Source of the DNA: Octopus sinensis
Taxonomy: Eukaryota
Assembly: GCF_006345805.1 (NCBI RefSeq)
Contig: NW_021832120.1
Span: 124,001-188,000 of the forward strand
DNA: 64,000 bases
Direction of reading: 5' to 3'
A program made the translations under genes and the position numbers. The notes beneath the pieces were generated by a model. It was not told the DNA's origin, ran no database searches, and saw only the letters and a list, made by a program, of their open reading frames with translations. Below, one piece after another: positions 1,775 through 57,776 of the stretch (its first letter is position 1; each line of letters begins with the position of its first letter).

Positions 1775-2673
1775 CAGGCATTCTCAACCTTTTTTTGTTC
1801 ATCGCCCACTTAGATATTTTATCGCCCCCCTTTGAAATTTTATCGCCCCCTTGTCCACATACAATTTAAAAATTTTTGGGCATTGTCCCTTAATTGGTTG
1901 TTTTTTGTATATAACTCAAAAATCAAAATATAAAATAATAAATCAAATGTAAAAATTGAATTTTTATTACAAATTATTAGTGAGACCCTTGATATTGATG
2001 TTTACTAGCTAAATATTCCATGTCGGGTTTAATTCTGCTCAACTTTAGGCGTATATCGCCTCTATAACACACTTCCAGTCTATTTCTTTCACATTGTGTA
2101 TTATGATTGACAAAACTAAATCCACTTTCAACTAAATAAGTGGTAGGGAATGTCAAACCCATATTTTAAATATTCGTTTTGATAATGACGACTTTTCTTA
2201 TTTGAGCGAGATAACATCTTAGATACCAAACAAGAATGTAAAAACTGCGTGCTATTTTAAATATAAAATTTAAGGATAAACACTATAGAAAAAATATTAA
2301 TAAATCTGAAAAATTATTAAAATTAACATGTATAAATACTTGAATTATATTAAAATTCGAATATTTTATTAAATATATTATCTGGCTGTTGAGACGTCAG
2401 GAATACAGGGGCCTTCTACTCGGACCCTACTCCAGCGTATTGCCTCATTAATCGAAAGGGTTACCGGCGACCCGTGTGAGCACCGGTATTTAATCGAAAG
2501 AATATCTATAGCCATAGTCAGAGGCAATACTCTGGCTATCTGCCAATGACTATTTCTCTTTTGATTTGAAATAAATTTTCAATATATTATCGCCCCCTTG
2601 TAAAAAATTATCGCCCCCCTGTACAAAATTTTCGCCCCTAGGGGGGCGATTCGCCCCCGGTTGAGAACACCTG
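1775..2673 (-). mobile_element. internally deleted hAT (Buster/Charlie-like) transposon
   Basis: TIRs CAGGCATTCTCAACC / GGTTGAGAACACCTG; 8-bp TSD gtctacgg (1767-1774, 2674-2681); subterminal atcgccccc repeats at both ends. ORF 1977-2162 is a Buster-type transposase C-terminus (FPTTYLVESGFS...RNRL...DIRLKLS...QGSH). Confidence 0.92.
2381..2550 (+). mobile_element. 3' stub of CRE-like RLE non-LTR retrotransposon nested in the hAT element
   Basis: Encodes LAVETSGIQGPSTRTLLQRIASLIERVTGDPCEHRYLIERISIAIVRGNTLAICQ*, the typical RLE C-terminus. Confidence 0.8.
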
Positions 2674-2871
2674 GTCTACGGAATATTAAAAATTAGTGGA
2701 TATATGAAAATGTTACATCATGCAGTTTTAACTGTCTATGAAGTTGAAAACAATAAAATATGGGCTACTCAAGAACAAGTATTTATTACGCTTCAAAGTC
2801 TAATAACTTGGTATGAATATCTTGGAATATAAAGAAAAGAGGAAAACAAAGCTGGGATAGGAATTCAAATA

Positions 2872-4075
2872 CAGTGCCTGACAAAAAAATTGGATTTGTA
2901 ATAAATCGACTTTTTTAAAATAAATTATAATTTAATTTTCTGGGCTCTCTGATAAGGTCGTTAAGAGCGGCGTGACGCGGGATGCGGCCAGCACTGCGTC
3001 TACACGATAGAGCGTGCAGTCCAAAGCGACAGATTTTCGCGCCACAGCGGCAGACATGTGGCTCGCATAGGCGAAGACCGAGACGTAAACAAATTCCAGT
3101 GCGTACGGACTCGCTGTCCAGAAGGTTCCCAATACTCGGCAGTGGAGTCGCATTCGCCGCTCTTAACGACCTTATCAGGAAAGCCCTAAAAGTCGCCGGA
3201 ATCCCCTCCTTGCTTGAACCCACTGGGATCGATCGGGGGGACGGAAAAAGGCCTGACGGGATCACTGTGTTTCCTTTCAACAGGGGGAAGCCCCTCACCT
3301 GGGATGCCACGTGTGTGGACTCTTTCTCGCCTCAGAACCTGCTGATGTCCGCCTCCGCCCCTGGATCTATTGTCACAACCGCGGAATGCAAAAAGATGCG
3401 GAAGTACTCCTCACTTACGGAGAAGTTCCAATTCCTTCCATTCGCGGTTGAGACTTCCGGTTCCTTGGGCAGTAAGACAATCAGCTTCGTTCAGGAGATC
3501 GGGTCCCGCATGTCTGCCATCACAGGCGACGCCCGCGAATCGAGATGGTTTTTCGAGCGGATATCCCTTGCGATAGTACGCTCTAATTCTTTCTCGATCG
3601 CGTCGGCTTCCCGCCCATGAAGCTTTTAATTAATTAACTTGTAGTTATTATCAAATAAAAAAAATTAATTTTCTTACATCATTCTTGGTAAAATTAGAAT
3701 TATTTTTTTTGATTTTTAAAATTATTTTTAGAATTTAATTTTAAAGCAGAATTTAAAATTTGTTGGACAAAAAAATTGGATTTTTGTTGTTTTTGATCTG
3801 ATCTCGTATAAATGAAGCGTAATTCAAAATCCATTTATCTGATTTTACAAAAGGAGTAATAATTGGATATTACTCTTCAGGAAAAACAATTGAAGAGATA
3901 TCTAAAATACTGAAAATTCCCAGATCGACCGTGTGATTTGTGACAAGAAAATTTTCCAAAGAAGGCACCACTACGCGAAAAATTGGATCTGGACGTTTAC
4001 CGAAACTCTCTTCAGATCAAAAAAACACAATACAATTAATCTCGAAGGATGAACCCTCAATTTCTGCTGTATACT
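2872..4075 (+). mobile_element. Tc1-like transposon remnant (left IR/DR end plus N-terminal HTH), interrupted by a retroelement
   Basis: TA|CAGTGCCTGAC start; 18-bp direct repeat gacaaaaaaattggattt at 2880-2897 and 3766-3783. From 3812, a frameshifted transposase N-terminus: ...GVIIGYYSSGKTIEEISKILKIPRSTV*...RKIGSGRLPKLS. Confidence 0.75.
2942..3664 (+). mobile_element. 5'-truncated, 5'-inverted CRE-like RLE retrotransposon (zinc knuckle plus restriction-like endonuclease)
   Basis: 3155-3620 (+) encodes AALNDLIRKAL...KRPDG...WDATC...FAVET...ERISLAIVRSN. 2942-3154 (-) encodes the upstream part LRLGLRLCEPHVCRCG...HALSC...RHAALNDLIR. A-tail at 3654-3664; candidate TSD ttaattttct (2932-2941, 3665-3674). 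Confidence 0.88.
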
Positions 4076-9276: not shown

Positions 9277-10254
9277 ATGGATGATGTTGAACAATCAGAA
9301 AATGAGAATATATGTGGTATTATCCATTTTATTATAAATTAAAGACCGAATTATAGTCAGTGGTGGTTTGGATAACAGAATAAGATTATTTAATAACTTC
9401 CCAAACTCAGTCAGATCACTCAATTTCTGGTCACACGTAAACGACGTGGAATTCAATCCAAAACAGGACATCCTGGCCGTGTCTGGACATGAGGTGGTCT
9501 TCCTCTACCACTACCCCTCCCTCCGAGAACTCTCCGGCACCAAACTGGGCTCTTCCAACGTCATTTCCATCAAATTCCGTCGTGACAACCTCACCATGTA
9601 CACTGCCTCAGACCAATTCCACAAAGCACTCAATTTGTGCGATATTTCCCGCCGTTTAGAACCCATCACGTCATTCGATTCGACCGCCATCCTATCCTGT
9701 CTGGACTACAGCCCCACCCTGGTTGGCCCCCACCTCCCCACTCCCAGGACACGTGCCTAACTGGGGACTTTTTAGGCCGGCTGATTATGTATGACTGGAG
9801 GTCCCCCACCAAGATAATCCTCCACTCTGTGCCTAATAATGTGTGTGCTATTTCTATGGTGGGGAACCAAGTGGTAGTAGGGAATAGTGCGGGCTATATA
9901 TATTCGTTTGATGTGAGGAAGTGTGATGAGTATGTGGGTCTGTTCTCGATGGGGAGGGGGTGTGTGTTGTCCTGTCGGGTGGGGGATCGGTTTGTGTTTG
10001 CCTCCTCGTCTGTGGGGAGGGTGGCTGTGTTGGATTCGAGGACATATGCTTGTTGTTATATGTTTGAGGATGAGTCGGCTAAGTATATAAGGGATTGTGT
10101 GCCTGTGTACGATGAATGTAGATTGGTTACTGCTAGTAATTCCTTTATTAAAATGTGGGATTGTACTACTTGTCGTGTTATTGATACGTGTAGTATCCAC
10201 ACTGAATCAGTCACCTGTCTTGCTTATCTCCCAAATGATCACGTCGATTTTTAA
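9277..10254 (+). CDS. MLST8: WD40 protein, LST8-like (TOR complex subunit)
   Basis: IIVSGGLDNRIRLF...SHVNDVEFNPKQDILAVSG...NVISIKFRRDNLTMYTAS parallels the LST8 N-terminal repeats. Introns 9317-9344 and 9722-9747. Confidence 0.65.
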
Positions 10255-10352: not shown

Positions 10353-12147
10353 CAGTTTACCCTCTATTGCTCGCCATTTCTATAACTCGCCACTTTTTTG
10401 GAAAAAATGCCATTTTTACTAAGGAAATTCCATTGCTCGCCAAATTCTTTTACTCGCCACGTTTTAGTATTAAAAAATTAAAATTTATTATTAAAAAAAA
10501 TAATTTTTCAAATATTTATACCGCGTGTTTTTTTTGTAACATGAGGAAGTGCTCAAGATTATGATCAAAAAAAAGAAATTATAAATTATCTTATTGTTAA
10601 TTCTTCTCTAAGTCTAAGGCGTGTTTCAGAAATTTTTTCGTCGCGTTTCAAAAAATCAATTTCGAGACGTGCAATTAACGATCTTAAATTGAACAAACAG
10701 AAGATTCTTGGAATTAATCCAATTTATAGGAGAAGTTCTCGTTTTTCGAAACTTAGATATTCAGCAATTGATTCTGAAATCATTGCCTGGATAGATTACA
10801 TGGAATCTATTGGAGTTTGCCTCAATGATGAGATAATTTTGTCGAAAGCAACTGAAATTGCTGCGTTAAACGGTCTCTTCGAATTTAAAGCCAGTAAAGG
10901 ATGGCTTGAAAAGTTCAAAAAAAGGCACAATGTAAAACTAAGAATTTTTCATGGTGAATTGGGATATACTGCGGATGAGTTCAAAGACCAAATCGAAGAC
11001 TTTAAAAAAATTATCTCTTCTAAAATAAATGAATATGGTTCAGAAAATGTTTATAATGCCGACGAAACCGGCGTATTTTACAAGACCATTCCATCAAAAA
11101 GTGTCTGCAGGAAACGCCGACCAGGACAAAAATTACTTAAAGATAGGTTTAACATTTTTAGCCAATTTGATGAATATTTACAATACCGGAATTCTTCAAA
11201 GGCTTGGATGAACATGGAAATATTTAACGAATGGCTGTATAACTGGAACAAGACTCTCAAACAAAAACAAAAAAAGATACTTTTGGTTGTAGACCATTGT
11301 CCTTCGCATAGAATAACAATCGAATTAAGTATGATAGAAGTTTTATATTTACCAAAAAACACGACTACTGTGCTTCAACCGATGGATCAAGGAATCATTA
11401 GATCATTCAAATCTCATTTCAACAAATTTAAATTTAAACATATAATTGAACAAATAAACTAAGGTGACGCAACTATTGAATGCTATAAAAAATTAACCCT
11501 GAAAGATGCAGTCTTATTTTCTTATCTAGCCTGGAAAGATGTGATACAATATCAAAATGTTTTCAGCACGCCAAATGGGAAAACAGAATTGAAGAACCTA
11601 TTATGGAAGACCATAAAATAAAAAATTTCGAACAAATTATAGAAAAATTAATGATCACAGATCCCATAAAAGAAGAGGAGTTTATAGACTTTACGTACTC
11701 TGAAAATGACGAACTTCATGAATTTGTTCAAAACAATAACTATGAAAATAACGATGAAAATGCAATTTTAGACAGTTCAATTACTGAAGATTGTGAAAGA
11801 AACAACTGTATTACACATCGAGATGCGATAAAATGTATTTCGGACCTCAAAAAATATTTTTCACATGACGATAATTTTGATGTGAATATGCTAGAAAGTT
11901 TATTAAAAATGCAAAAAAATATAGAGAAAAGATCATACAAAAAAACTATAAATGATTACTTTACTTAAAATTTTGGTTTTTTAAATAAATGTTTCGGCTA
12001 TTTATTTAAATGTTTAGATAGTTAAAAATTATAGAAATTTTTTGTTGATAGAAAATAGGATATTGATTATTTCTCTTACTCGCCAAATTCTCTTAGTCGC
12101 CAATTTTGGCTTGGTCCCAAAAATGGCGAGCAATAGAGGGAAGACTG
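10353..12147 (+). mobile_element. pogo/Tigger DNA transposon with frameshifted transposase
   Basis: TIRs CAGTTTACCCTCTATTGCTCGCCATTT / AAATGGCGAGCAATAGAGGGAAGACTG with TA TSD. CENP-B HTH (FKASKGWLEKFKKRH) and DDE_1 motifs (VYNADETG, LVVDHCPSH, LQPMDQGII). Confidence 0.95.
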
Positions 12148-28335: not shown

Positions 28336-28712
28336 TTTAACCGTATATATAATTATTTTAATGAGTTTTTAAATTGCTTTAGGTTTTTTGGTTTTATTGA
28401 CTATTGTTAAGAAATCGTTTAAAAATTTTTGTATAATCGGGTTATTATATTTTAAACACGTAGCATCTTTTAGATTAAAAAAATATGTCATTGTTTCCAA
28501 TCACGTAGGCAATTTTATTTTTTAATATAATATGTCGCGAGCGCAGGCGCGACCGAGCGCTAGACGGACTTTGACAGCTAAAGCCTATCATCAACAAAAT
28601 ATTTATTAAATTATTAAAATTTTAACATGATTTAAAAATTAAAATTGAAATAAACTTAAGGTTTCATTGAATCCCATAAAATAATTTATAAGTAGACCTT
28701 AATAGAAAAAGT

Positions 28713-28784
28713 GATCGTCATGTGGTTCACCTTCTCGTGGAGACGATTGGATGCTGATTTCACATCAGCAACAAACAGAACAAC
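28713..28784 (+). ncRNA. HDV-like self-cleaving ribozyme (predicted) at the retroelement 5' end
   Basis: P1 GAUCGUC/GACGAUU (7 bp, G1-U wobble); P2 GUGGUUC/GAACAAC (6 of 7 pairs); P3 ACC/GGA (2 of 3); L3 UUCUCGU; J1/4 GG; P4 UGCUGAU/AUCAGCA; J4/2 ACAAACA. G1 abuts the TSD. Confidence 0.75.
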
Positions 28785-28845
28785 TTTCCCCCTTGCCAAC
28801 CAACCTGTCAACGGTTTGGTTGGTAGTGGCTACGGGACGAGCGCC

Positions 28846-28906
28846 AAGCTTACGTTCCTGACTCTATTGTGATTCGGTGTGGGATGTGGAACAAAACCCT
28901 GGACCT
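28846..28906 (+). other. 2A-like (StopGo) peptide preceding the APE domain
   Basis: DVEQNPGP is in frame with APE. Restoring two single-base deletions gives KLTFLTLLLIRCGDVEQNPGP. Confidence 0.8.
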
Positions 28907-31900
28907 GAGCCTATTAGAACACTAACCATCCTTCAATTGAACATCAACGGGATTTCCAAGAAATGCAATGACCTACGCTACTTTCTACACACGAACTCTA
29001 TTGATATAGCTCTTATTCAAGAGACCAAACTTACTCCAAAATCCCAAACCCCCCGTTTTAAGGGATATTCCACCATTCGTCGTGACCGCCAGTCTGGAAA
29101 GCCTGGCGGTGGTCTCATTACTCTCATTCACGAGGCCATTCCCTTTGCAGACTCAACTGCCAACATTGAATCTCTCTTAACTAATGATCGATTTACCGAA
29201 ATTTCATCTATTCAAATTAACATTAACAAGATATGTTACTCTGTTGTTAACACATATATCCCCCCGAATTCGTCTGTGCTCCCAATATACACCGAACTTA
29301 CTGCCTCTTTTTTCATTGAAAACTGTATTCTATGTGGCGACTTCAACGCCCACCATCCTCTCTGGTTATCCACAAACAAACTGACAAACGTGGCCAGCAA
29401 ATCACAACGGATGCGGAAGAATTGATCACTCTAAACAACCCTCTTCTACACACCGCTGTGCAATGCGACCTGGAGATTCAAACACTTCTCTGACATTACC
29501 TTATGTTCCCCAAAACATCGCCCTCGACGCCAAATGGACAGTTCTGTACGACCTACCAACGGACCACAATCCTATTCTAATCAAAATAAACCATCACCCT
29601 GTAAAGAAGAGAATTACGAAGACCTACATTAACTACAAACGTGGGAAAGGGACTCGTTCAGGAGTGAAACTGAACGTATATTCAGTAATTTTTCTTGCTC
29701 CTCCATTCAATCATTTGACGCTGCCGTTGCTTTCTTTACTAGTACACTTCTTTCTGCGGACAAAAAATTATTCCCCGCGGTTCATCCGAAATCACGGCCT
29801 CCATTTCCCCCACCTATCATTGAACTATTCAAAAAACGAAGGAGGATCAAATCGACGACTTCTATCAATGGAAATGGAGAATCTCTAGCAGAAATCAACA
29901 AACAAATTGACGAATTAATCAAGAAACATAAAACTGACGAATGGAATGATTTTATCACTTCAATAACCCCCAAATACTGGATCCCGTGCTTTCTGGAGAA
30001 CCCTCAAGAAAATTCACACGAGGCAAACATGTCCCCTCTCACATGCCACCGGTATCTCGACCAAAAAATCTGTCCTATCTTTCCAGGATCAAGCCAACAT
30101 CTTAATTCGCCATATGCAAAAATCAGTCACCTTCCTACCCCAAAGGATCTCCGTTTCGTAAGAAAATCACATTATAAGTCAAATGACAATTCTACTGACT
30201 ATATTAACATCCCAGAATCACTTACCAGGCAACTTGTTGTTAACGCGGCGGATTCTAACGCCAGAGGTCCTGATGGCCTTGCCATCCACCACCTAAAAAA
30301 TCTGGGTCCTAATGGCTTTCTGGCTCTGACCAATATAATCGAATACTCGATCAACCACGGTCTGGTTCCTATGCTTTGGAAGAAATTACCATCATCCCTA
30401 TCCCAAAGCCAAATCGTGATACCTCTGACCCCTCCTCTTTTCGACCTATCTCTTTGATCTCAGTGGTTTCAAAAATAACAGAGCGAGTTGTATTGAGCAT
30501 CATAAAACCTTTCCTCCCATTTGCTGAATCTCAACATGGCTTTCGTTCTTTGCATTCCACTTCCACCCATCTTTCAAAATGACACAATTCATTGCGGATG
30601 GGTTTCAACAATCATAAGCCACCTCAAAGAACAATTATTGCATCCATCGACATTGAAAAGGCATTTGACAGAACGTCAAGACACGTTCTGTGTAGGAAAA
30701 TAACCGATACGGAATTCCCCACCCAAATAAAGTCATGGCTACTCTCTTTTCTCTCTGGGCGTCTTGGTCGCACCACAATCATGTCTTCTTACTCACGCTA
30801 CAAATACTTGCCTAACGGAGTTCCCCAAGGCTCGGTCCTTTCACCTGCCTTATTTAACTTACATCTGTCAAATATCCCGACGAACAATAATACTCTACTT
30901 CTCTCCTACGCTGATGACTAATTTTTGCCTCCCGCCACCAAAACATAATCACCGCTTCTGGATTTCTGCAGGAACACATAACACTCTTTCGTCCTGGCTG
31001 AAATGCAATCTTCTTCAACCTTCTCCTTCCAAATCATCTGTTACGCTATTCACAACTGACCGCGTCAGTTCAACTTAGAGCCTAAAACTATTCCTAGACA
31101 ACACTCCACTCCCAGTTGAAAAATCCCCCAAAATCTTGGGTCTGAATTTGATTGCTGTTTGTCCTTCTCGAAACATGTTTCATATATCTGTGGAAAATCC
31201 CAGAAAAAACTCAATGTGCTCCGAGCTATTGCGGGGACTTCATTTGGGAGGATAAGGAAAGTCTAACAACTGTATACAAGCAGTTTATTAGAACAACTAT
31301 GAACTACGCCATCCCTGCTTGGGGTTCCTGCTTATCTATACAAACCTTGAAAACTTCAGAGAACTCAAAACTCAGCATTACGAATTATTACCGGCTGTCT
31401 AAAAACGACACCTACCGACCACCTACATTGGGAATCGAAAATCCTTCCAATCAGTGACCATTTTGAAATGCTCGGGCTGCAATTTCTTGACAAATGCCGA
31501 ACCCTAAATCACCCTGGCTACTTCCTCTGGCACTCCACTAACAACAGGAGAATAGTTCCGACCCTCGCGGACAAAGTCCGCAAGCTTTACGATCCCCTCC
31601 GGACATTAACCAGAAGGGGATTCACGACCTGGTGGCTACGAGGGCAATCAGATGTCTTGGAATAAAACAAGCTTCTGGGACGCCTCCGCCGCCAATTAAT
31701 AAGATCGAATCCTCCCTCTCAAGAGAAGCCCGAGTGAACTTGGCTCGCCTCCGCTGTGGCCACCATATGGCCTACACGATTATCGCATAAAAATCGGTCT
31801 TGGTGAAATAACCCCTTCCTTCCCTCAACGACCCTTTCTCCTGTCCAGGCCGCCTTCTACTTCCTCGGAACACCGGATCACGATCGGGGATCTTTGGGAG

Positions 31901-32479
31901 CGTCCGACATTGGCCCTAACGTTCTTGTTAGCACCGGCTTCCTTCAATTGAAGGGGCGGGGGGGTAAATAAATAAATAAAAAATAAATAATAGAAAAAGT
32001 AAAATCAATGAATACTGAACGCTAATTGGGTGTAGGTTGGTGAGGGGGGTAATTAATTGAGATCTCATTGTTATTTTTTGTTTTAACTCTAAAATTAGTC
32101 TTCTCATCAAAAATGAACTGTGCTGAACGGCGTGCTCCTTCAGAAGATCTTGTTTTGACAATTTTAATAATATGAAGCATTTAGAGTTTTTTCATTATTC
32201 TAAAATATCAATTATAAATTTTAAAATATTATTTTTATTTATGAAATCGGTTTTAAAGCTCATTCTGCTTTGGCATCGATTTTAATTTTTGTTATCGAAT
32301 ATATTTAATCCCAAATACAAGCCTAGGTATTTGTTCAATTTATAGATTTTTTGATTGATCGGATCTAGAAATTGAGTGGTCGCTCGCTGCGCTCTGTTCG
32401 CTCGTGCGCTCCGCGACATAATATGTTGCGGTTTTGTATTTTTTTTATTTTTTTAAATAATATTTTTTTATTCAAGCAC

Positions 32480-35200
32480 CAAATGAATCAATTAAGTATT
32501 AATTAAAGTATAATTTTCTCAATCTGTTCATTACTTCCTCTATTTGATATTCCCTCAGGTAAGGATGCCAGCCTCTGTCCTTGAAAGTGCTGCCAGCAGT
32601 GGCGAAGTTATGGTCATATCTATTTGTCGATAAATAACTTTTATTCTTTTGTCCAGTTCGAGAGTCCTTTGGCATGGCTCCATTCTGTCCTATGGAAACA
32701 ATCATGCTCTCAAAGGTTTTTTTGATAGTGACAATTTAAACAAATGGGCTTGTTATGTCTAGTATTATGTCTGTTTTAATGAAGGTGTCCACTTTGATTT
32801 CGACAACTCATAACAGACACAGTTTGTACAGAGTGAGTTTTCAGCTTCTTCTCATTCTTGAGTCCGAATTCACACATAAATGAAAATGAATACACCTACT
32901 ACTCATTATGCCTTCTGACATAGTCCCCCTGGTAGGCACAGTGGTCGACAGTCTTCTTCCATTTCATACAGTGTGGACACATTAAATTGTGGTCTGCGAA
33001 GAATAAATTTCTATCCTGAGAGAAGACGAACAAGCCTTCTGACCGTGGAGAATTATTGCCTCTGGCTAGCAGTGACTGGAATCTTCAACCTTCACGAAAT
33101 CTTCCTTAGAATTTTATAGAAAATTGAGTGAAGACTTTTTGAAAAGGTCTGATCCAGTAGGCGCATGTATCGCATCTGACAACAGTTTTTTTTCCAGTAA
33201 AAGTGAATCTTCCAAAGAATATTTGTGCTTCAAGTATTCTTCAATAGTGGCCAGATGAGTTTTTTCAAACATTTCGGCATATGAAGAATCGAGAAGCTTC
33301 TTTTGCAAGCACCACTTGTGCGTTTTAGTCCAAAAGGAGTCCAAGGAGCATACTTTCCATTAGAAAAGAAATTGAGCGTATCCTCTCCCAAAATTCTTAC
33401 AAGGGAGATATAATCTCTGTTTGTTTGCTGGTCGGAGGTGTATTCTGTATTCAGTTAATTTTGATCGGATTGTATCGTCTACCATTTCGAATTCAAATGG
33501 CTCAATATCAACTAGTCCGATGTAATGATTCACCTCTTCCATCATTTTGACAATAACATTTTCACTCTTCGAAACAAGTTTCAAATCATCAATGAAAAGA
33601 AGATGATTGGTCGGAAAACGGTGTCCTGTGATCTGATTTCTCGCCCCATAGAGACCTTCGGGAACTTATAAGATAATAGGCGGCTCAGTGGGTCCAACAC
33701 AAGGACAAACAGCATAGGTGACAAACTGTCTCCTTGGAGGATTCCCCGTTCAATTCGCACATCTCGAATATATTTGTTATTTAGTCTGAGTTTGACACTC
33801 CATTTAGTAATCAGCGACTCGACAAATTTTACAATCCATCCAGGTATCTCAGACTTTTCCAAAAATTTGTAATAGAAAAGAATGATCCACTGAGTCAAAT
33901 GCTTTTTTAACATCAATCCATGCAGAGTGTAGCTTGTATCGTTTGTATCTGTTGATATCTTGTTAACTATTGCTTGCTCTTTGCACCTTGGCATATTCTC
34001 CTCGTCCCAATTGGTTTTCTGAGAGGAGGTCGTAGCTTCCACATATTCACAAAGTTTGGGTATTACACTTAGTCATCAGTTTATAGAGAGACGGCATACA
34101 TGTTATAGGCCGCAATTCTTGGAGACCTGGGATCTTCGCACTTTGGGATCAGTGTTGTGACCCTGTATAGAACCAATTTCCAGGAATGGTTTTTTCACTA
34201 ATGACATTAGGATTTGCTGAAAGATTGAATCATGAAGTTATGTAAACTTCTTCAAGAAGAAATTATAGACTCCATCACAGCCTGGGGCTTTCCAATTTGG
34301 CAAATATTTAACTGTCTCTTCAAATAAACACTTTTGGACCTCGGCTGATACGCCTTCCACTCCAGTCATCCTCTTCTCAATTGTCTCACCAATCAACTGT
34401 TTTTTTCGCCACATGTTCTCCCAGTATATTCCACATTCTTCATCATCCACTGAGATGACGTTTTTAGTACTGTTTTCTTTAAGACCTCTGTAGAAAGCTT
34501 TCCGATTAAATTCAAATTTTTGATTATCTAGTCGAAATCCTTTTCTCGTTTCATGTGTAGCTAACTTTTTTTGGATAACCGCAATTTTTCATTAATAAAA
34601 GAGATTATTCTCGCTCTCTCTCCAGAGTTTTTCTTTTTATATCCAACCAGAGATAATGCATGGCATGCAAGTGGTTTTTCTTCAGCCGCAAGAGTTTTCG
34701 CAAAAAAGTTTTCAATATAGCCCAGTTTTATTTTCCATTGCCAATTTTGCTCTCCACATTATTTTTCCACAGAGACTTTTCAAAATTCTTCGTGCTCAAT
34801 ATTTGATAACACACTTGTCAGCGTAAACAATTGTTGAAATCTGATCCATTGAATTAGGGGGATTCTCTTTGATATATGCAGCTACTACACGATTCAGACA
34901 CTCCAGTAAAGGAAACTTTAGTTTTGAATAGGGAATCTTTTTTGTACATGGTCGAAGGGAATGATCAATCAACAATATTTCTTCCAACTGTTGCATAAAT
35001 GTCAATTTACAACAAGAGAACAGTTTTGCATCTTAGTGGTTGAATTTTGCCTTTTATGCACATACTCAAGCTTTTTATATTCCGACAAAGAAATTGCATC
35101 TCCAAATTTTGAGTTAAAACCCTCCAATATGACGCTCCATCCACCCCTAGGGACAGTCCCATCCTCGAACGGATAGCTTCGTGAATTGAAATTGCCCACT
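32480..35200 (-). mobile_element. decayed R4/Dong-like RLE non-LTR retrotransposon
   Basis: WKAPGCDGVYNFF, RGILQGDSLSPMLFVLVLDPLS, FIDDLKL, CPHC..KKTVDH, DYVRRHNE. Many stops and frameshifts. Confidence 0.85.
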
Positions 35201-35899
35201 GTTTTCTATCTTCAATATTAATAGAGGAAATAATGGCTTTAAGGGCATTTATTTTCGTGTTCGTTTCCAGACAGGGGGGTCTTGAATTTTCAATAACAGA
35301 ACGAGTCTGGACATCCTCCTTGGCCGTTCTTTTTCTTTTTAAAGGTTTATGTTATTTCGGCTCTGCAGTCCAAATGTTCAGTACCAGAAGAATCAAGCAC
35401 AACCATCCACAACAAACACGTGTTAATAATAATCGGTTTTGTATAATTATATTTCGGTGTAATTTTTATCAGATTTAATATTTTATTCTGTATTGTCGGG
35501 TTAATCTTGTTTTTTGACAAGAAATTATAGTAAAAATATTTTTATTTGATTTAAAATAATATAATACTTTTAGTATGTTGGATTTTCAAGAAAAATTAAC
35601 TCTGTTAAAAAAATAAAATTCCATTTGCAAATATGACTTTAAATTAAGCAGCCAAATTTCTGGCATCTACAAAAATGAGAGTAACAAATTGAAAAACAAA
35701 AAATATTTTGGACAAATAATGCAAATAAATATCAAATTTGTAACTAATGTAAAAGATTGGGCAAGTTATTTTTATAATTTTGACACACCCTCGTCTACTT
35801 TTTAATAGTATTCGACATTGAATAATATTAAGCATGATATAGTTCATAAGTAAAAATTAGAATTATTATTCATTATTGTTTCTTTTCCTTGTAGAATAC

Positions 35900-50587: not shown

Positions 50588-53213
50588 ATGTTGGAAGGGA
50601 CACCTCATTTTAACTATGAGTCGGTTATTGCCGCATTAAATGTTACTTATGGGACTGAATTTAACGAGGAAATGCAAATGAAGGCCTCCGAATACCTCAC
50701 TCTCTTCCAAAAGTCACAAAACGCCTGGGAACTATGTGGACAAATCCTCTGGTCCTCCTCCATGTCCTCTCACAGAGCATTCGCTGCAAATACAATCCGT
50801 AGTAAAGTACTCCTCAGTCCTAATCCCCCAGATAAACTACGACTATAGTGAACTATCCCCCTCGAGTTATAAAGTATTAAAGTTCTAGAACATTCTAGAA
50901 CATTCTATCCTTTCTATTGGAACAATTGTGGCTGTATAGAGAAGACAGTGTGACGACAATTCGGACTGAGCTTATTCTGGGAATAGTCCAGTTGGTGATA
51001 CGAGGGAATGACTGGGAGTGGGTGTTTGATAAGTTCCTGGAGGTGTATTCTCAAAACACGTGGATTGTCCTCACCTTCCTCAGAGAATGTGCTCTCTCTG
51101 TCAAAAGGGGGTCACCCTTCGCTGCCTTCCTGTCCTCCAAGGAGACTGTCCTTCTTCACTACGTGGCCTTGGGGATGGACAGAGAACTTGGATGGAGATG
51201 TGTGACGTCATTACTCAAGAGTGACGTCATCAAGAATGTCCCTATCCTTATTCCTCCTCTTTTTGGTGTTCTCAGACAAAGGCCAATCCACAGCACAGTC
51301 GTCCAGGCTTTGGGTGCCCTGGCTGTATATTGTAAGAAAAATGGCGGGCTTTGGGAGCAGATTGTTCCATATATATTGGAACTTCCCGCCTTGATGGGTG
51401 AGAAAGAGACAGACGAGGCACTGTCGGATATAATTTCTGACTTTGGGTCGTGTATGGTGAAGGATCCCTCAGTGGAGAAGGTTTTGGGGGTCGAACTGGG
51501 TCTCCTCTCATCCCCCCACTCCCGGGTGGTCTTCAATGGACTGTACTTCTGGACTACACTCGTGTTGGAGGAGGGTGACCGATGTGTGCCCCACATCACC
51601 CCTCTTGTCCTCTCTATGGTCAATATATGTCGACATGTGTGGACTCCCAACACAACTGAGGATATCAGGAAGGAGGTGGAGGACTGTCTTTCTTATCTTT
51701 TGCCTGCTCATTTAGGCAGAATTAATAATGTGGTATTTTCCCGCCTTTATTTATTGATTTTTGGAGTGATGGAAGGTGGGGAAGGTGATGTGGTGGACTC
51801 CTGCCTATATTTGCTCAGTAGAGTGAATGGGAAGGGGTATTGGTATATATAACACATGTAGTACATCACCTGAGGACACAAATTATATTCTACAATATAT
51901 TTCCCGCCAAAACATAATGGCGCGAAGTTTGAAGTTATTGGGAGTGATATCACATTCATTCACGTGTCAGCACATTGACTATATAATGGAGTATATAAAG
52001 GCAGTGATTGGTGACCCTGCCTTGTGTGAGGATGCCTCCTCTGCCTATTGGGGACTGTGTTCGAACTGCCCTCCTGAACTGATGGTCCCCCACCACCTGC
52101 CCCTGCTGAGACTGTCCCTGAGAAGTGAGTGCAGTAAGGCAGTGATAGCCAGCATTGTCTTCTCAATATCGAATCTGCCAGTGGATATGTTCAGTGTGTA
52201 TTTCTGTGGAGTGTGTGTGCATATAAGAGACGACTTTGTGGCCCAACTGCCCCCTACGAGTGGAGTACTGACATGCTTCCTCACCCACATAGCCACTGCC
52301 TACAAGTCAGTGAGTGTGGGGGCACATCAGTCCCCTCAGGCCTTTGGGGAGATCTGGCCTGTGCTGGCACAAATGTTCGACCAGACCATTGGAGAAGAGC
52401 AGTTGGCCGAGCTGTATGTGCGGTGTCTCAGGCATATAATAAGACAGACAGTCCTGCCTATTCACATAATCAACACATTGGTGGAAAGAGTAGTGTGTTG
52501 TGGTCAGTCTAGATTGAGTGTTTATATCCTATATATAAGCATACATGTTTTGTATATTTGGGGGGGATTATAATTGAGCAATATGGGAGGGAGGAGGCAT
52601 TCCAGTTGAGTCGGTTGTTGGCTGTGCTTGTCCTGCCCAGTCTGAGTGTGTTGAGGGACACCAATGGGGTGGTTAATAACCCGGACTATGCCAAGGACTT
52701 TTTCCAGATGATGTCGAGGTATGTGAGGGGATTGACAGGCAGACTAGTGGTGGCCAATCCACAGTCCTACGTGGAGTACTCTGCCCCTGTTCTCGACTGT
52801 GCTCTCTCTGCCCTGTTCTCTCACAATAGGGATGTGTATGCTGATGCCTGTTCATTTCTGTGTCTGGTTGTGGGGGGGAATGGACTGAGTATTCTACGGG
52901 CAGTGCTCACCTCCTTTACTGGATGTGTCACTCATTTGTCGTCGGTGGTGAAGGTGGTGGTGGCTGTGAATAGACGTGACCCGCAGGTGGGTGGTGTGTT
53001 TATGGTAGGCATTTCCGGGTATTCTGAGGGTTGTTTTGTCGGAGATGCCGCGGAGTGGGGATTGTGTGAGGGGAGTGCTTTCTGATGGGGAAATGAGCAC
53101 TTTCTATGACTCGGTCACTGCGTACTGCCCATGTCTTCATTCATAGGGGAGTCACCAGTCCTAAACTCGTGAGGACTGCATTTAATAAATTCAAGTCTAA
53201 TTTTATTGTGTGA
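50588..53213 (+). CDS. TNPO3: transportin-3 / Mtr10-like importin-beta family protein
   Basis: IBN_N region KASEYLTLFQKSQNAW...FAANTIRSK|INYDYSELS; HEAT-like helices; NNPDYAKDFFQMMSRY. Last intron 53122-53146; stop at 53211-53213. Confidence 0.82.
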
Positions 53214-56524: not shown

Positions 56525-57776
56525 CAGTGAAACCTCTCGAATCCGCTGCTTCTCGAATCCGCCGCTTCTCGAATCCGCTTGTTTTAATCAAAAATTTAAA
56601 ATTTCCTATGAATGATTCTTGAATCCGCTTGTTTCTCGAATTCGCTCCTCATGTATTATGAAAAATAATTTTTTTATCTAATTGTAAGTTAAATTAATTA
56701 ACATTTTAAAATTCTCATTACACGTTAAATTGTATTTTTGTGATGCGTCGCTGTGTTAGACTTTCTATCAACGAAAAAATTTCTATACTACGTTATATTT
56801 CTGACAACCCATTCGTTTCTGCACCTCAAATTTCCAGGATTTTTTCTTCACGGTTAAAAAGAAAATTTCTCCGAGAACTATAAACGATCTTAAATCAAAA
56901 TCGGACCTTTTGAATAGGACTGACATCAAAAAATTAAACATAACGAGAATTCCAAAACTCAAATTTAATGAAATTGATGTAGCGATGATAACATGGATTA
57001 ACTTAATGGAATCTAGTGGAGCAATTCTATCAGATTCGATGTTAATTGCAAAAGCTCTTAAGTTTGGAAAAAATTTTCCAGAATTTAAAGCAAGTCGTGG
57101 GTGGCTAGAAAAGTTTAAATTACGAAATGGTATCAAGTTAAGAAAATTTCACGGAGACAGTGGATCAGTAAATCATGATGAACAATCTATTACTGATTTT
57201 AATGAAACAATGAGTTTAAAAATTGAACAATATGGATTGGACAATGTTTATAATGCAGATGAAACTGGTGTTTTTTACAAGGCGATTCCTTCCAAAAGTG
57301 TGTGCACCAAATCACGGCCTGGAATAAAGTTGTCGAAGGATCGATTTTCGTTACTATTATGCGCAAATTGTTCTGGTTCCGATAAAAGAAGGCCTGTGAT
57401 GATAGGAAGATTCAAAAGTCCAAGGTGTTTTAAAAATTTCAACATTGGAAAATATGTTACCTACACCCATTCCAATAAGGCATCAGAGCTCTAGAGATTA
57501 TTAAAACTTATGCTTCTCAGGTAAATGCAGATATAGATGATCATGAAAATATTATGCGAATTGGGGAAATGTTAAGAAAATCAATTAAAAAAAATAAAAT
57601 TTCTGATTTTTTTGAATATAAATAATTTTATGTATTGAGTCATTTGTATATAAAAAGAAATACTTAATCTATATTGTAAGTTCACATTTCAACTATAAAA
57701 TATTATTTAAATTGCCTCTCTAATCCGCCGATTTTTTGGTCGGTCCCAAAATCGGCGGATTCGAGAGGTTTTACTG
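56525..57776 (+). mobile_element. pogo/Tigger element, internally deleted
   Basis: TA|CAGTGAAACCTCTCGAATCCGC...GCGGATTCGAGAGGTTTTACTG|TA; repeated gaatccgc; ORF 56910-57494 with FKASRGWLEKFK and VYNADETG. Confidence 0.93.

Follow-up and report, generated by a model that had tools for sequence, protein, structure and literature searches.

A young LINE family in the Octopus sinensis assembly with a candidate HDV-like ribozyme, an overlapping start codon and a 2A motif at its 5′ end

The element, its copies and their common 5′ end

Analyzed here is a 64,000-nucleotide stretch of the Octopus sinensis assembly (GCF_006345805.1, contig NW_021832120.1, positions 124,001 to 188,000 of the forward strand), referred to below as the window. 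It holds a full-length long interspersed nuclear element (LINE) in which a single open reading frame (ORF) encodes a short leader, a 2A motif, an apurinic/apyrimidinic endonuclease (APE) and a reverse transcriptase (RT). We consider it probable that this element belongs to a young, low-copy family whose members have a ribozyme like that of hepatitis delta virus (HDV) at their head, a start codon within that ribozyme, and the 2A motif just before the APE domain. Coordinates of all features are collected in Table 1.

The limits of the element follow from its target-site duplication (TSD): since an identical 13-mer stands on either side, the element is the interval between the two. Pfam searches with an intact ORF returned the APE and RT domains only. 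RNase H is likewise absent from the nearest homologues and present in more distant ones. Within the Ingi/Vingi clade, Ingi has an RNase H and Vingi does not; a single ORF with APE and RT is compatible with this clade, though not specific to it.

Over its whole length the window copy is 98.3% identical to an intact copy (L040). It has 20 substitutions relative to L040, along with 32 deletions of one base each and 11 extra bases, of which five are in the 3′ tail. Homopolymer runs hold 27 of these 43 indels. Because this excess of indels has the look of errors in long-read assembly and not of decay, the apparent damage to the window copy should not be over-read. Compared with other copies it is short of five single bases in its first 199 nucleotides. 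Several other copies of the family show the same indel-heavy pattern.

A search of the 2.7-Gb source genome, in which the window is part of contig C8591, with positions 28713-28906 returned at least 40 copies, here called family 1. Their identity to an intact copy is 98.3-99.9%, and the family is therefore very young. Thirty genomic 5′ ends were aligned for comparison of start sites. Of these, 23 begin with GATCGTCAT and have unrelated flanks upstream (∼18 independent loci), three begin with AATCGTCAT, and four are truncated or rearranged. TSDs of 10-16 bp directly adjoin nt 1, with no extra base between, in 10 independent copies (the window copy included); one family 1 copy has an extra C at the junction. 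A first-pass annotation of the window had fixed the start of the element at G28713 from the 13-bp TSD. The exact duplication, the shared start and the flush TSDs elsewhere all bear this out.

At four loci (L020 on C1190, L024 on C8694, L025 on C8638 and L026 on C8598) an inverted 5′ segment is joined to a 5′-truncated direct copy. The inverted segments start at nt 1-2 (L025: nt 10) and end at nt 146-158, so that a breakpoint near this position recurs, and the direct copies begin at nt 1800-3138. Such arrangements resemble the products of twin priming. Three of these four loci have an inverted segment that starts at nt 1-2, and the second cDNA would accordingly have run off the RNA at its first or second base. 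Two further loci, L009 (C8901) and L013 (C2220), carry a short duplicate of element nt ∼12-30 directly upstream of nt 1, an arrangement that points to a template switch, or to microhomology, where the 5′ junction was formed.

Table 1. Features of the window copy, and heads of the sister families with their loci in place of positions.
Feature	Position or loci	Strand	Remarks
Full-length single-ORF LINE, leader-2A-APE-RT, (TAAA)n tail	28713-31987	+	3,275 bp
5′ TSD TAATAGAAAAAGT	28700-28712	+	exact 13-bp match to 31988-32000
3′ TSD TAATAGAAAAAGT	31988-32000	+	exact match to 28700-28712
HDV-like ribozyme candidate	28713-28783	+	consensus element nt 1-71, double pseudoknot
P1 5′ strand GAUCGUC, nt 1-7	28713-28719	+	pairs with 28742-28748; predicted cleavage directly 5′ of G28713
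J1/2 AUG, nt 8-10	28720-28722	+	ORF start in intact copies
P2 5′ strand UGGUUC, nt 11-16	28723-28728	+	partner GAACCA, consensus nt 66-71
P3 CC/GG (nt 18-19/27-28) around L3 UUCUCGU (nt 20-26)	28730-28740	+	
P1 3′ strand GACGAUU, nt 30-36	28742-28748	+	G1.U36 at cleavage pair
P1.1 GG, nt 37-38	28749-28750	+	pairs with U21 and C22 of L3
P4 hairpin UGCUGAU-UUCAC-AUCAGCA, nt 40-46/52-58	28752-28770	+	covariation; also predicted by RNAalifold
J4/2 ACAAACA, nt 59-65	28771-28777	+	candidate catalytic C60 = C28772
P2 3′ strand GAAC (consensus GAACCA)	28778-28781	+	one C missing in window copy
Hairpin inside leader coding region	28795-28824	+	conserved; different stem sequence at the same place in families 2-4
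2A core DVEQNPGP	28883-28906	+	predicted skip between G (28901-28903) and P (28904-28906)
APE endonuclease domain	28931-29383	+	Pfam PF03372 (Exo_endo_phos) and PF14529
RT domain, split by frameshifts in window copy	30400-30918	+	Pfam PF00078 (RVT_1)
Family 2	L084-L090		P1 AAACAAC/GUUGUUU; P2 GGGUC/GACCC; P3 ACC/GGU; L3 UUCACGU; P4 UGCUGU/ACAGUA; J4/2 ACUAAAA
Family 3	L102		P1 AUCCAAC/GUUGGAU
Family 4	L108-L112		P1 AACUUUC/GAAAGUC (A1.C36) or GACUUUC/GAAAGUU (G1.U36)
Decayed head	L113		P1 GGAAAU/AUUUCU

Fold of the head and covariation among sister families

The CPEB3 and HDV ribozymes are double pseudoknots with a G1.U wobble at the cleavage site, a seven-nucleotide L3 of the form UUC[A/U]CGU, and a C in J4/2. 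The head of the window element can be drawn with all of these traits; it differs in its context (intronic for CPEB3, viral for HDV) and in the spacing that follows the C. The first-pass annotation had predicted an HDV-type fold from G28713 with this L3, and the searches described below sustain that prediction. Scanned with an HDV descriptor that places no constraint on sequence, the AT-rich window gave 272 matches; HDV topology alone is therefore cheap. The loose descriptor was dropped as evidence, as it matches hundreds of places in AT-rich DNA and in the 5′ ends of relatives. When L3 was constrained to UYCNCGY, a single match remained in the 64 kb on both strands, at 28713. Shuffled sequences gave 0.1 matches per 128 kb with the constrained descriptor, and 8 of 100 shuffles contained any match. 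A covariance model built for the family (R2 in our numbering of models) scored 85.5 bits at 28713-28786, its sole significant match in the window. Minimum free energy z-scores were -1.0 and -1.6, a measure that is uninformative for a pseudoknot.

Within family 1 the core is essentially invariant. In a subfamily of 88% identity, all changes before nt 72 fall in P4 (in the distal stem, in the loop, and a C57 to U change that keeps a G.U pair). Sister heads were uncovered with a pattern on P3-L3-P1.1 from which family 1's own P1 was excluded. A ribozyme-core pattern had 47 matches genome-wide and none in a reversed control. The heads obtained comprise three sister families and one decayed example (Table 1). 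These figures also bear on the proposal that an ordinary LINE has an end which resembles such a ribozyme by chance. The 272 unconstrained matches are what such a proposal would draw on, and set against them are the one L3-constrained match, which falls exactly at nt 1, the covariation across several families and the empty control. We regard chance as an extremely improbable explanation.

Covariation was assessed on an automatic alignment of nine sequences (A2). The full pseudoknotted structure is paired in 91% of cells, as compared to 78% in shuffles (none of 500 reached the observed value), and when partners were slid along the alignment only 26-52% of cells were paired. Five of the seven P1 pairs are changed on both sides across families, the first pair being G.U, A-U or A.C. 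P2 has 5-6 bp in every family, with 89% of cells paired and one pair changed on both sides, U14-A68 to G14-C68 (GGUUC/GAACC to GGGUC/GACCC). Three P4 pairs are changed on both sides. Of the helices in the fold as first proposed, P1 and P2 thus held up in the consensus, and P3 came down to two invariant C-G pairs; a third pair (A-U) exists in family 2 only and is A.A or A.C elsewhere. The P1.1 pairs U21.G38 and C22-G37 never vary in the source genome, and are uninformative for covariation there for that reason.

The unpaired parts of the core are conserved as well. Every family consensus has L3 of the form UUC[A/U]CGU (UUCNCGU), with variants in single decayed copies. C60 is invariant within a J4/2 of AC[AU]AA[CA]A across the four families, in agreement with the earlier choice of C28772 as the key cytosine. 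That annotation had also taken J4/2 to be over-long through a 2-nt insertion. This did not survive comparison: J4/2 has 7 nt in almost all family 1 copies and in all sister families, and its length is for this reason a feature of the lineage and not damage.

A structure scan of the consensus also finds a minimal HDV-like fold without P4, consisting of P3 UUCA/UGGA, L3 CCUUCUCG and a P2 (AUGUGG/UCACAU) that lies within P4. In this fold P3 and P1.1 pair completely in all families. It was rejected because just 64% of the cells in its P2 pair and compensatory changes, of which P4 has three, are lacking there; it also places the conserved J4/2 and P2 3′ strand outside the ribozyme. We judge this fold very unlikely to be the relevant one.

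Several observations on the same families may be recorded here. Full 5′ ends of family 2 (L084/L086, L089, L090) have a G, or a run of 4-5 G residues, just upstream, and family 1 has nothing similar; these may be untemplated G residues, or the true start may lie one base upstream. All 47 core matches and all copies of families 1, 2 and 4 are on small contigs (C381 to C13026) and none is on scaffolds C1-C27. Other repeats matching the same kind of pattern are almost exclusively on these chromosome-scale scaffolds. Two organisms, or two compartments of a genome, may be combined in this assembly. Further candidate HDV-like cores with a perfect 7-bp P1 occur at L071 (C7:13033322, minus strand) and L091-L093 (C9888, C9076), with P1 and L3 of AGUCUGC/GCAGACU and UCCACGU, or GGUUCCU/AGGAAUU and UUCCCGU. 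Three other repeated matches, CCTCCACGTGGCTCCGGCAGG, CCTTCCCGTGGTTCCAAAGGG and CCTCCTCGTGGTACCACCTGG, were rejected as ribozymes, since the P1 5′ strand was unmatched or the repeat continued upstream.

In many insect LINEs transcription begins at nt 1 under the control of an internal promoter. A promoter of this kind could set the fixed 5′ end of the window element as well, in which case the helices would belong to a non-catalytic structured leader (acting in stability, in protein binding or like an internal ribosome entry site) with a nest of P1, an inner hairpin and P4 as its functional structure. RNAalifold on A2 returned this nest of P1, P4 and an inner hairpin of 5 bp (columns 15-19 against 26-30; 28726-28730 against 28737-28741). 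The inner hairpin is 100% paired in all families, column pair 15-30 appearing as U-A, G-U and G-C. The G runs that precede family 2 ends could be derived from a cap. Moreover, in the trypanosomatid element L1Tc the first 77 nt are promoter and ribozyme at once, and a post-cleavage refold that retains P1 and P4 has been proposed (PMC3383444).

Against this, the first 7 nt differ wholly between families and are compensated in nt 30-36, which is unlike an initiator element, and no extra G is found at family 1 junctions. The nested fold leaves unexplained GG at nt 37-38, C60 in AC.AA.A, a P2 of 5-6 bp with a double change, and an L3 as in known HDV-like cores. A promoter and a ribozyme are in any case compatible with each other. 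We therefore hold a promoter with a non-catalytic leader to be unlikely. By analogy with the refold proposed for L1Tc (PMC3383444), the inner hairpin may be an alternative conformer of the same RNA.

The following points weigh against an HDV-like ribozyme with a start codon inside it. P2 of the window copy has only 4 bp, which is possibly an assembly error. P3, in most families just two invariant C-G pairs, provides no covariation signal and is shorter than the usual 3 bp. In HDV 3 nt follow the catalytic C; here 5 nt lie between the J4/2 C and P2. The inner hairpin (columns 15-19/26-30) competes with both P2 and P3. All covariation is drawn from four to five lineages of one genome. A search of the window against Rfam gave no match, either above gathering score or at E≤10; the Rfam ribozyme models are each specific to a lineage and omit the pseudoknot. 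The core of family 2 was aligned by Rfam to drz-agam-1 (RF01787) at a score below threshold (16.1 bits, E = 3.7, gathering score 37). This weak alignment lines up P3 ACC/GGU, L3 and the GGA after P1, in resemblance to the drz-agam-1 core (P3 ACC/GGU, L3 UCCUCGU, GGA). Finally, initiation would be unusual at an AUG with just 7 nt between it and an uncapped end. With regard to P3, an active R2 ribozyme with a P3 mismatch is on record (PMC3774820).

Start codon, leader and 2A motif

An uninterrupted ORF of 1,092 or 1,093 amino acids runs from the J1/2 AUG at nt 8 (AUG8) in the intact copies L039 and L040. No other in-frame ATG occurs before residue 252, and AUG8 is thus the only ATG able to yield a complete endonuclease. 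The leader has 63 amino acids and reads MWFTFSWRRLDADFTSATNRTNFSPLPTNLSTVWLVVATRRAPSLRSLTLLLIRCGDVEQNPG/P, where the slash marks the predicted skip. It opens with MWFTFSWRRLDADFTS and closes with LLLIRCGDVEQNPGP, its C-terminus being LLLIRCGDVEQNPG/P, and the APE fold follows eight residues on.

DVEQNPGP had been placed at 28883-28906 by the first-pass annotation with APE (Pfam Exo_endo_phos) behind it, and this was confirmed. In intact copies the motif is in frame with APE-RT; its family 1 form is GDVEQNPGP and its family 2 form GDIEKNPGP. Directly before the family 1 motif stands SLTLLLIRC, a leucine-rich upstream tract. The J1/2 ATG is kept in families 2 and 4. From it, family 2 encodes MWVTFTWCCLDAVITVTKRPSTISPSDRCHDLLAAIEQAQSSRSHAPLPLCGDIEKNPGP-SSQLRLLQLN (that is, MWVTFTW...PLCGDIEKNPGP-SSQLRLLQLN), and family 4 is open from the ATG as far as its sequence was fetched.

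The first-pass annotation had translation open inside the ribozyme, which the ORF of intact copies supports; it had, though, assigned the start to an ATG at 28751, counted as part of P4 and as in frame with APE. It further proposed to cut 2 nt from J4/2 and to restore 2 nt near the 2A motif, which gave a leader beginning MLISHQQQ. Both proposals arose because the window copy lacks the five single bases mentioned above. The ATG at 28751 (nt 39) does share the frame of the APE ORF in the window copy, and in that copy alone; even there TGA (28859-28861) intervenes. In intact copies it lies in frame 3 and meets a stop after 25 codons, which refutes this reading. J4/2 already has its 7 nt in nearly all copies and in all families, and the bases lost from the window copy are all outside it. 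No such leader exists, and we find translation from this ATG scarcely credible; the ORF of intact copies begins with the ATG at 28720.

Where the RNA helices covary, the leader has no conserved protein sequence, and the changes in P1 read RR, CC or RK. As the peptide simply tracks the covariation of P1, it looks like a by-product of the RNA. The hairpin that had been noted downstream of the ribozyme is present, and may insulate folding of the ribozyme or act in initiation.

The remainder of the window includes two ORFs for Tc5/pogo-type transposases (HTH_Tnp_Tc5 plus DDE_1; 10545-11462 and 56805-57494, both plus strand) and a second, unrelated RT-like element (33114-35351, minus strand). Host-like exons encode WD40 (9586-10254) and transportin-like (51827-52573) sequences.

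Relatives, known systems and a proposed cycle

We examined 120 homologues, which have 40% identity or less and come mostly from metagenome contigs. About 50 of them have LLxxxGD[VI]ExNPGP within their first ∼110 amino acids. Contigs of nine relatives were searched for ribozymes. Two, both metagenome contigs (L052:195-270 and L114:120-195), have an HDV-like core exactly where the sequence they share begins, of the form GCCAUC ... GCC-U[GU]CACGA-GGU-GGUGGC-G[CA], in which P1.1 covaries with L3 (G-C versus U-A). Their protein identity is 39-40%, and the 2A motif is encoded ∼100 amino acids downstream of the core. In several relatives the frame from the upstream stop to 2A lacks an ATG, and L052 has none inside the element ahead of 2A. 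An HDV-like core was not found in L051, L053 or L115-L119, of which L051 appears to be 5′-truncated, and Rfam identified no known ribozyme in any of the nine contigs.

The system most like the window element in layout is L1Tc/ingi, likewise a single-ORF APE-RT LINE with an HDV-like ribozyme at its head and an in-frame 2A just before the endonuclease. The L1Tc ribozyme (Pr77/L1TcRz) covers ∼75 nt from the start of the element and cuts on the 5′ side of nt +1, the 2A is of the form DxExNPGP, and TSDs are ∼12-13 bp (PMC5814959, PMC3383444, PMC6765202). The joint presence of ribozyme and 2A in L1Tc, which the first-pass annotation had cited as precedent, is correct (PMC5814959). The two systems differ in that the L1Tc ribozyme is described as part of the 5′ untranslated region, whereas the ORF of the window element opens in J1/2 so that the ribozyme would be translated. 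Furthermore, Pfam detects neither RNase H nor C2H2 in the window element, which ends in (TAAA)n where L1Tc has poly(A).

HDV-like ribozymes of R2, RTE, Baggins and the drz-Agam type process the RNA at nt 1, as is predicted for our element, and share with it a covarying P1 and a conserved L3/P3/P1.1 core; support of cap-independent initiation has been proposed for them (Ruminski et al. 2011, as cited in PMC6765202; Eickbush 2013, PMC3774820). No 2A is reported for these; the window element, unlike them, has a 2A, a P3 of mostly 2 bp, a J4/2 of 7 nt and an AUG in J1/2. Metazoan single-ORF LINEs with 2A have in common with it a GD[VI]ExNPGP motif 40-80 amino acids from the N-terminus, at or shortly before APE (PMC3708506). 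The study that described them does not mention ribozymes, found no 2A in Vingi, and left open the purpose of the short N-terminal product (PMC3708506).

In the literature searched, no paper joined ribosome skipping, ribozymes and retrotransposons. L1Tc is the one element known to combine a ribozyme with an N-terminal 2A; apart from it, the two have been studied almost separately. New here are the occurrence of this module in several young families outside trypanosomatids, the J1/2 start codon that overlaps the ribozyme, and a core with a 2-bp P3 and a 7-nt J4/2. Coding overlap with the ribozyme has not been described previously.

The following cycle is proposed for the element, assuming that the head is an active HDV-like ribozyme. 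Transcription would occur by read-through from upstream DNA or from the element's own promoter, and the ribozyme would then cut directly 5′ of G1, leaving RNA with a 5′-OH. Cleavage at this position would give every RNA, and hence every full-length new copy, the same first base. With AUG8 in J1/2 as the only usable start codon, the sequence of the ribozyme would also be translated. Initiation on uncapped RNA so near to the end would need cap-independent entry assisted by the ribozyme or by other structure, as reported for R2-type and viral ribozymes; promotion of translation initiation by ribozymes has been described (PMC6765202, PMC13725137). Skipping at 2A would release the 63-amino-acid leader co-translationally, and APE-RT would begin with proline.

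A broader proposal, which we put forward tentatively and with less than even confidence, is that the N-terminal 2A of single-ORF LINEs is the partner of a 5′ ribozyme, serving to discard a leader dictated by the RNA, and that the two make up an old clade-wide module shared with L1Tc/ingi. Translation would then begin within the ribozyme or directly downstream of it. The start codon would be the J1/2 AUG in the present element, and several relatives that lack an in-frame AUG ahead of 2A would apparently use codons other than AUG.

If this is true, the pairing of ribozyme and 2A is not a peculiarity of trypanosomes, and the families described here would offer a natural example of catalytic RNA that is read by the ribosome as well. 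It may also provide an answer to the question left open for 2A-bearing LINEs, in that their short N-terminal product would be the translated ribozyme or initiation region. The first ∼200 nt of the element amount to a natural test system for ribozyme-assisted, cap-independent initiation very near a 5′-OH end. The same system is suited to the study of overlap between catalytic RNA and coding sequence, and of a possible switch between the ribozyme and its alternative hairpin.

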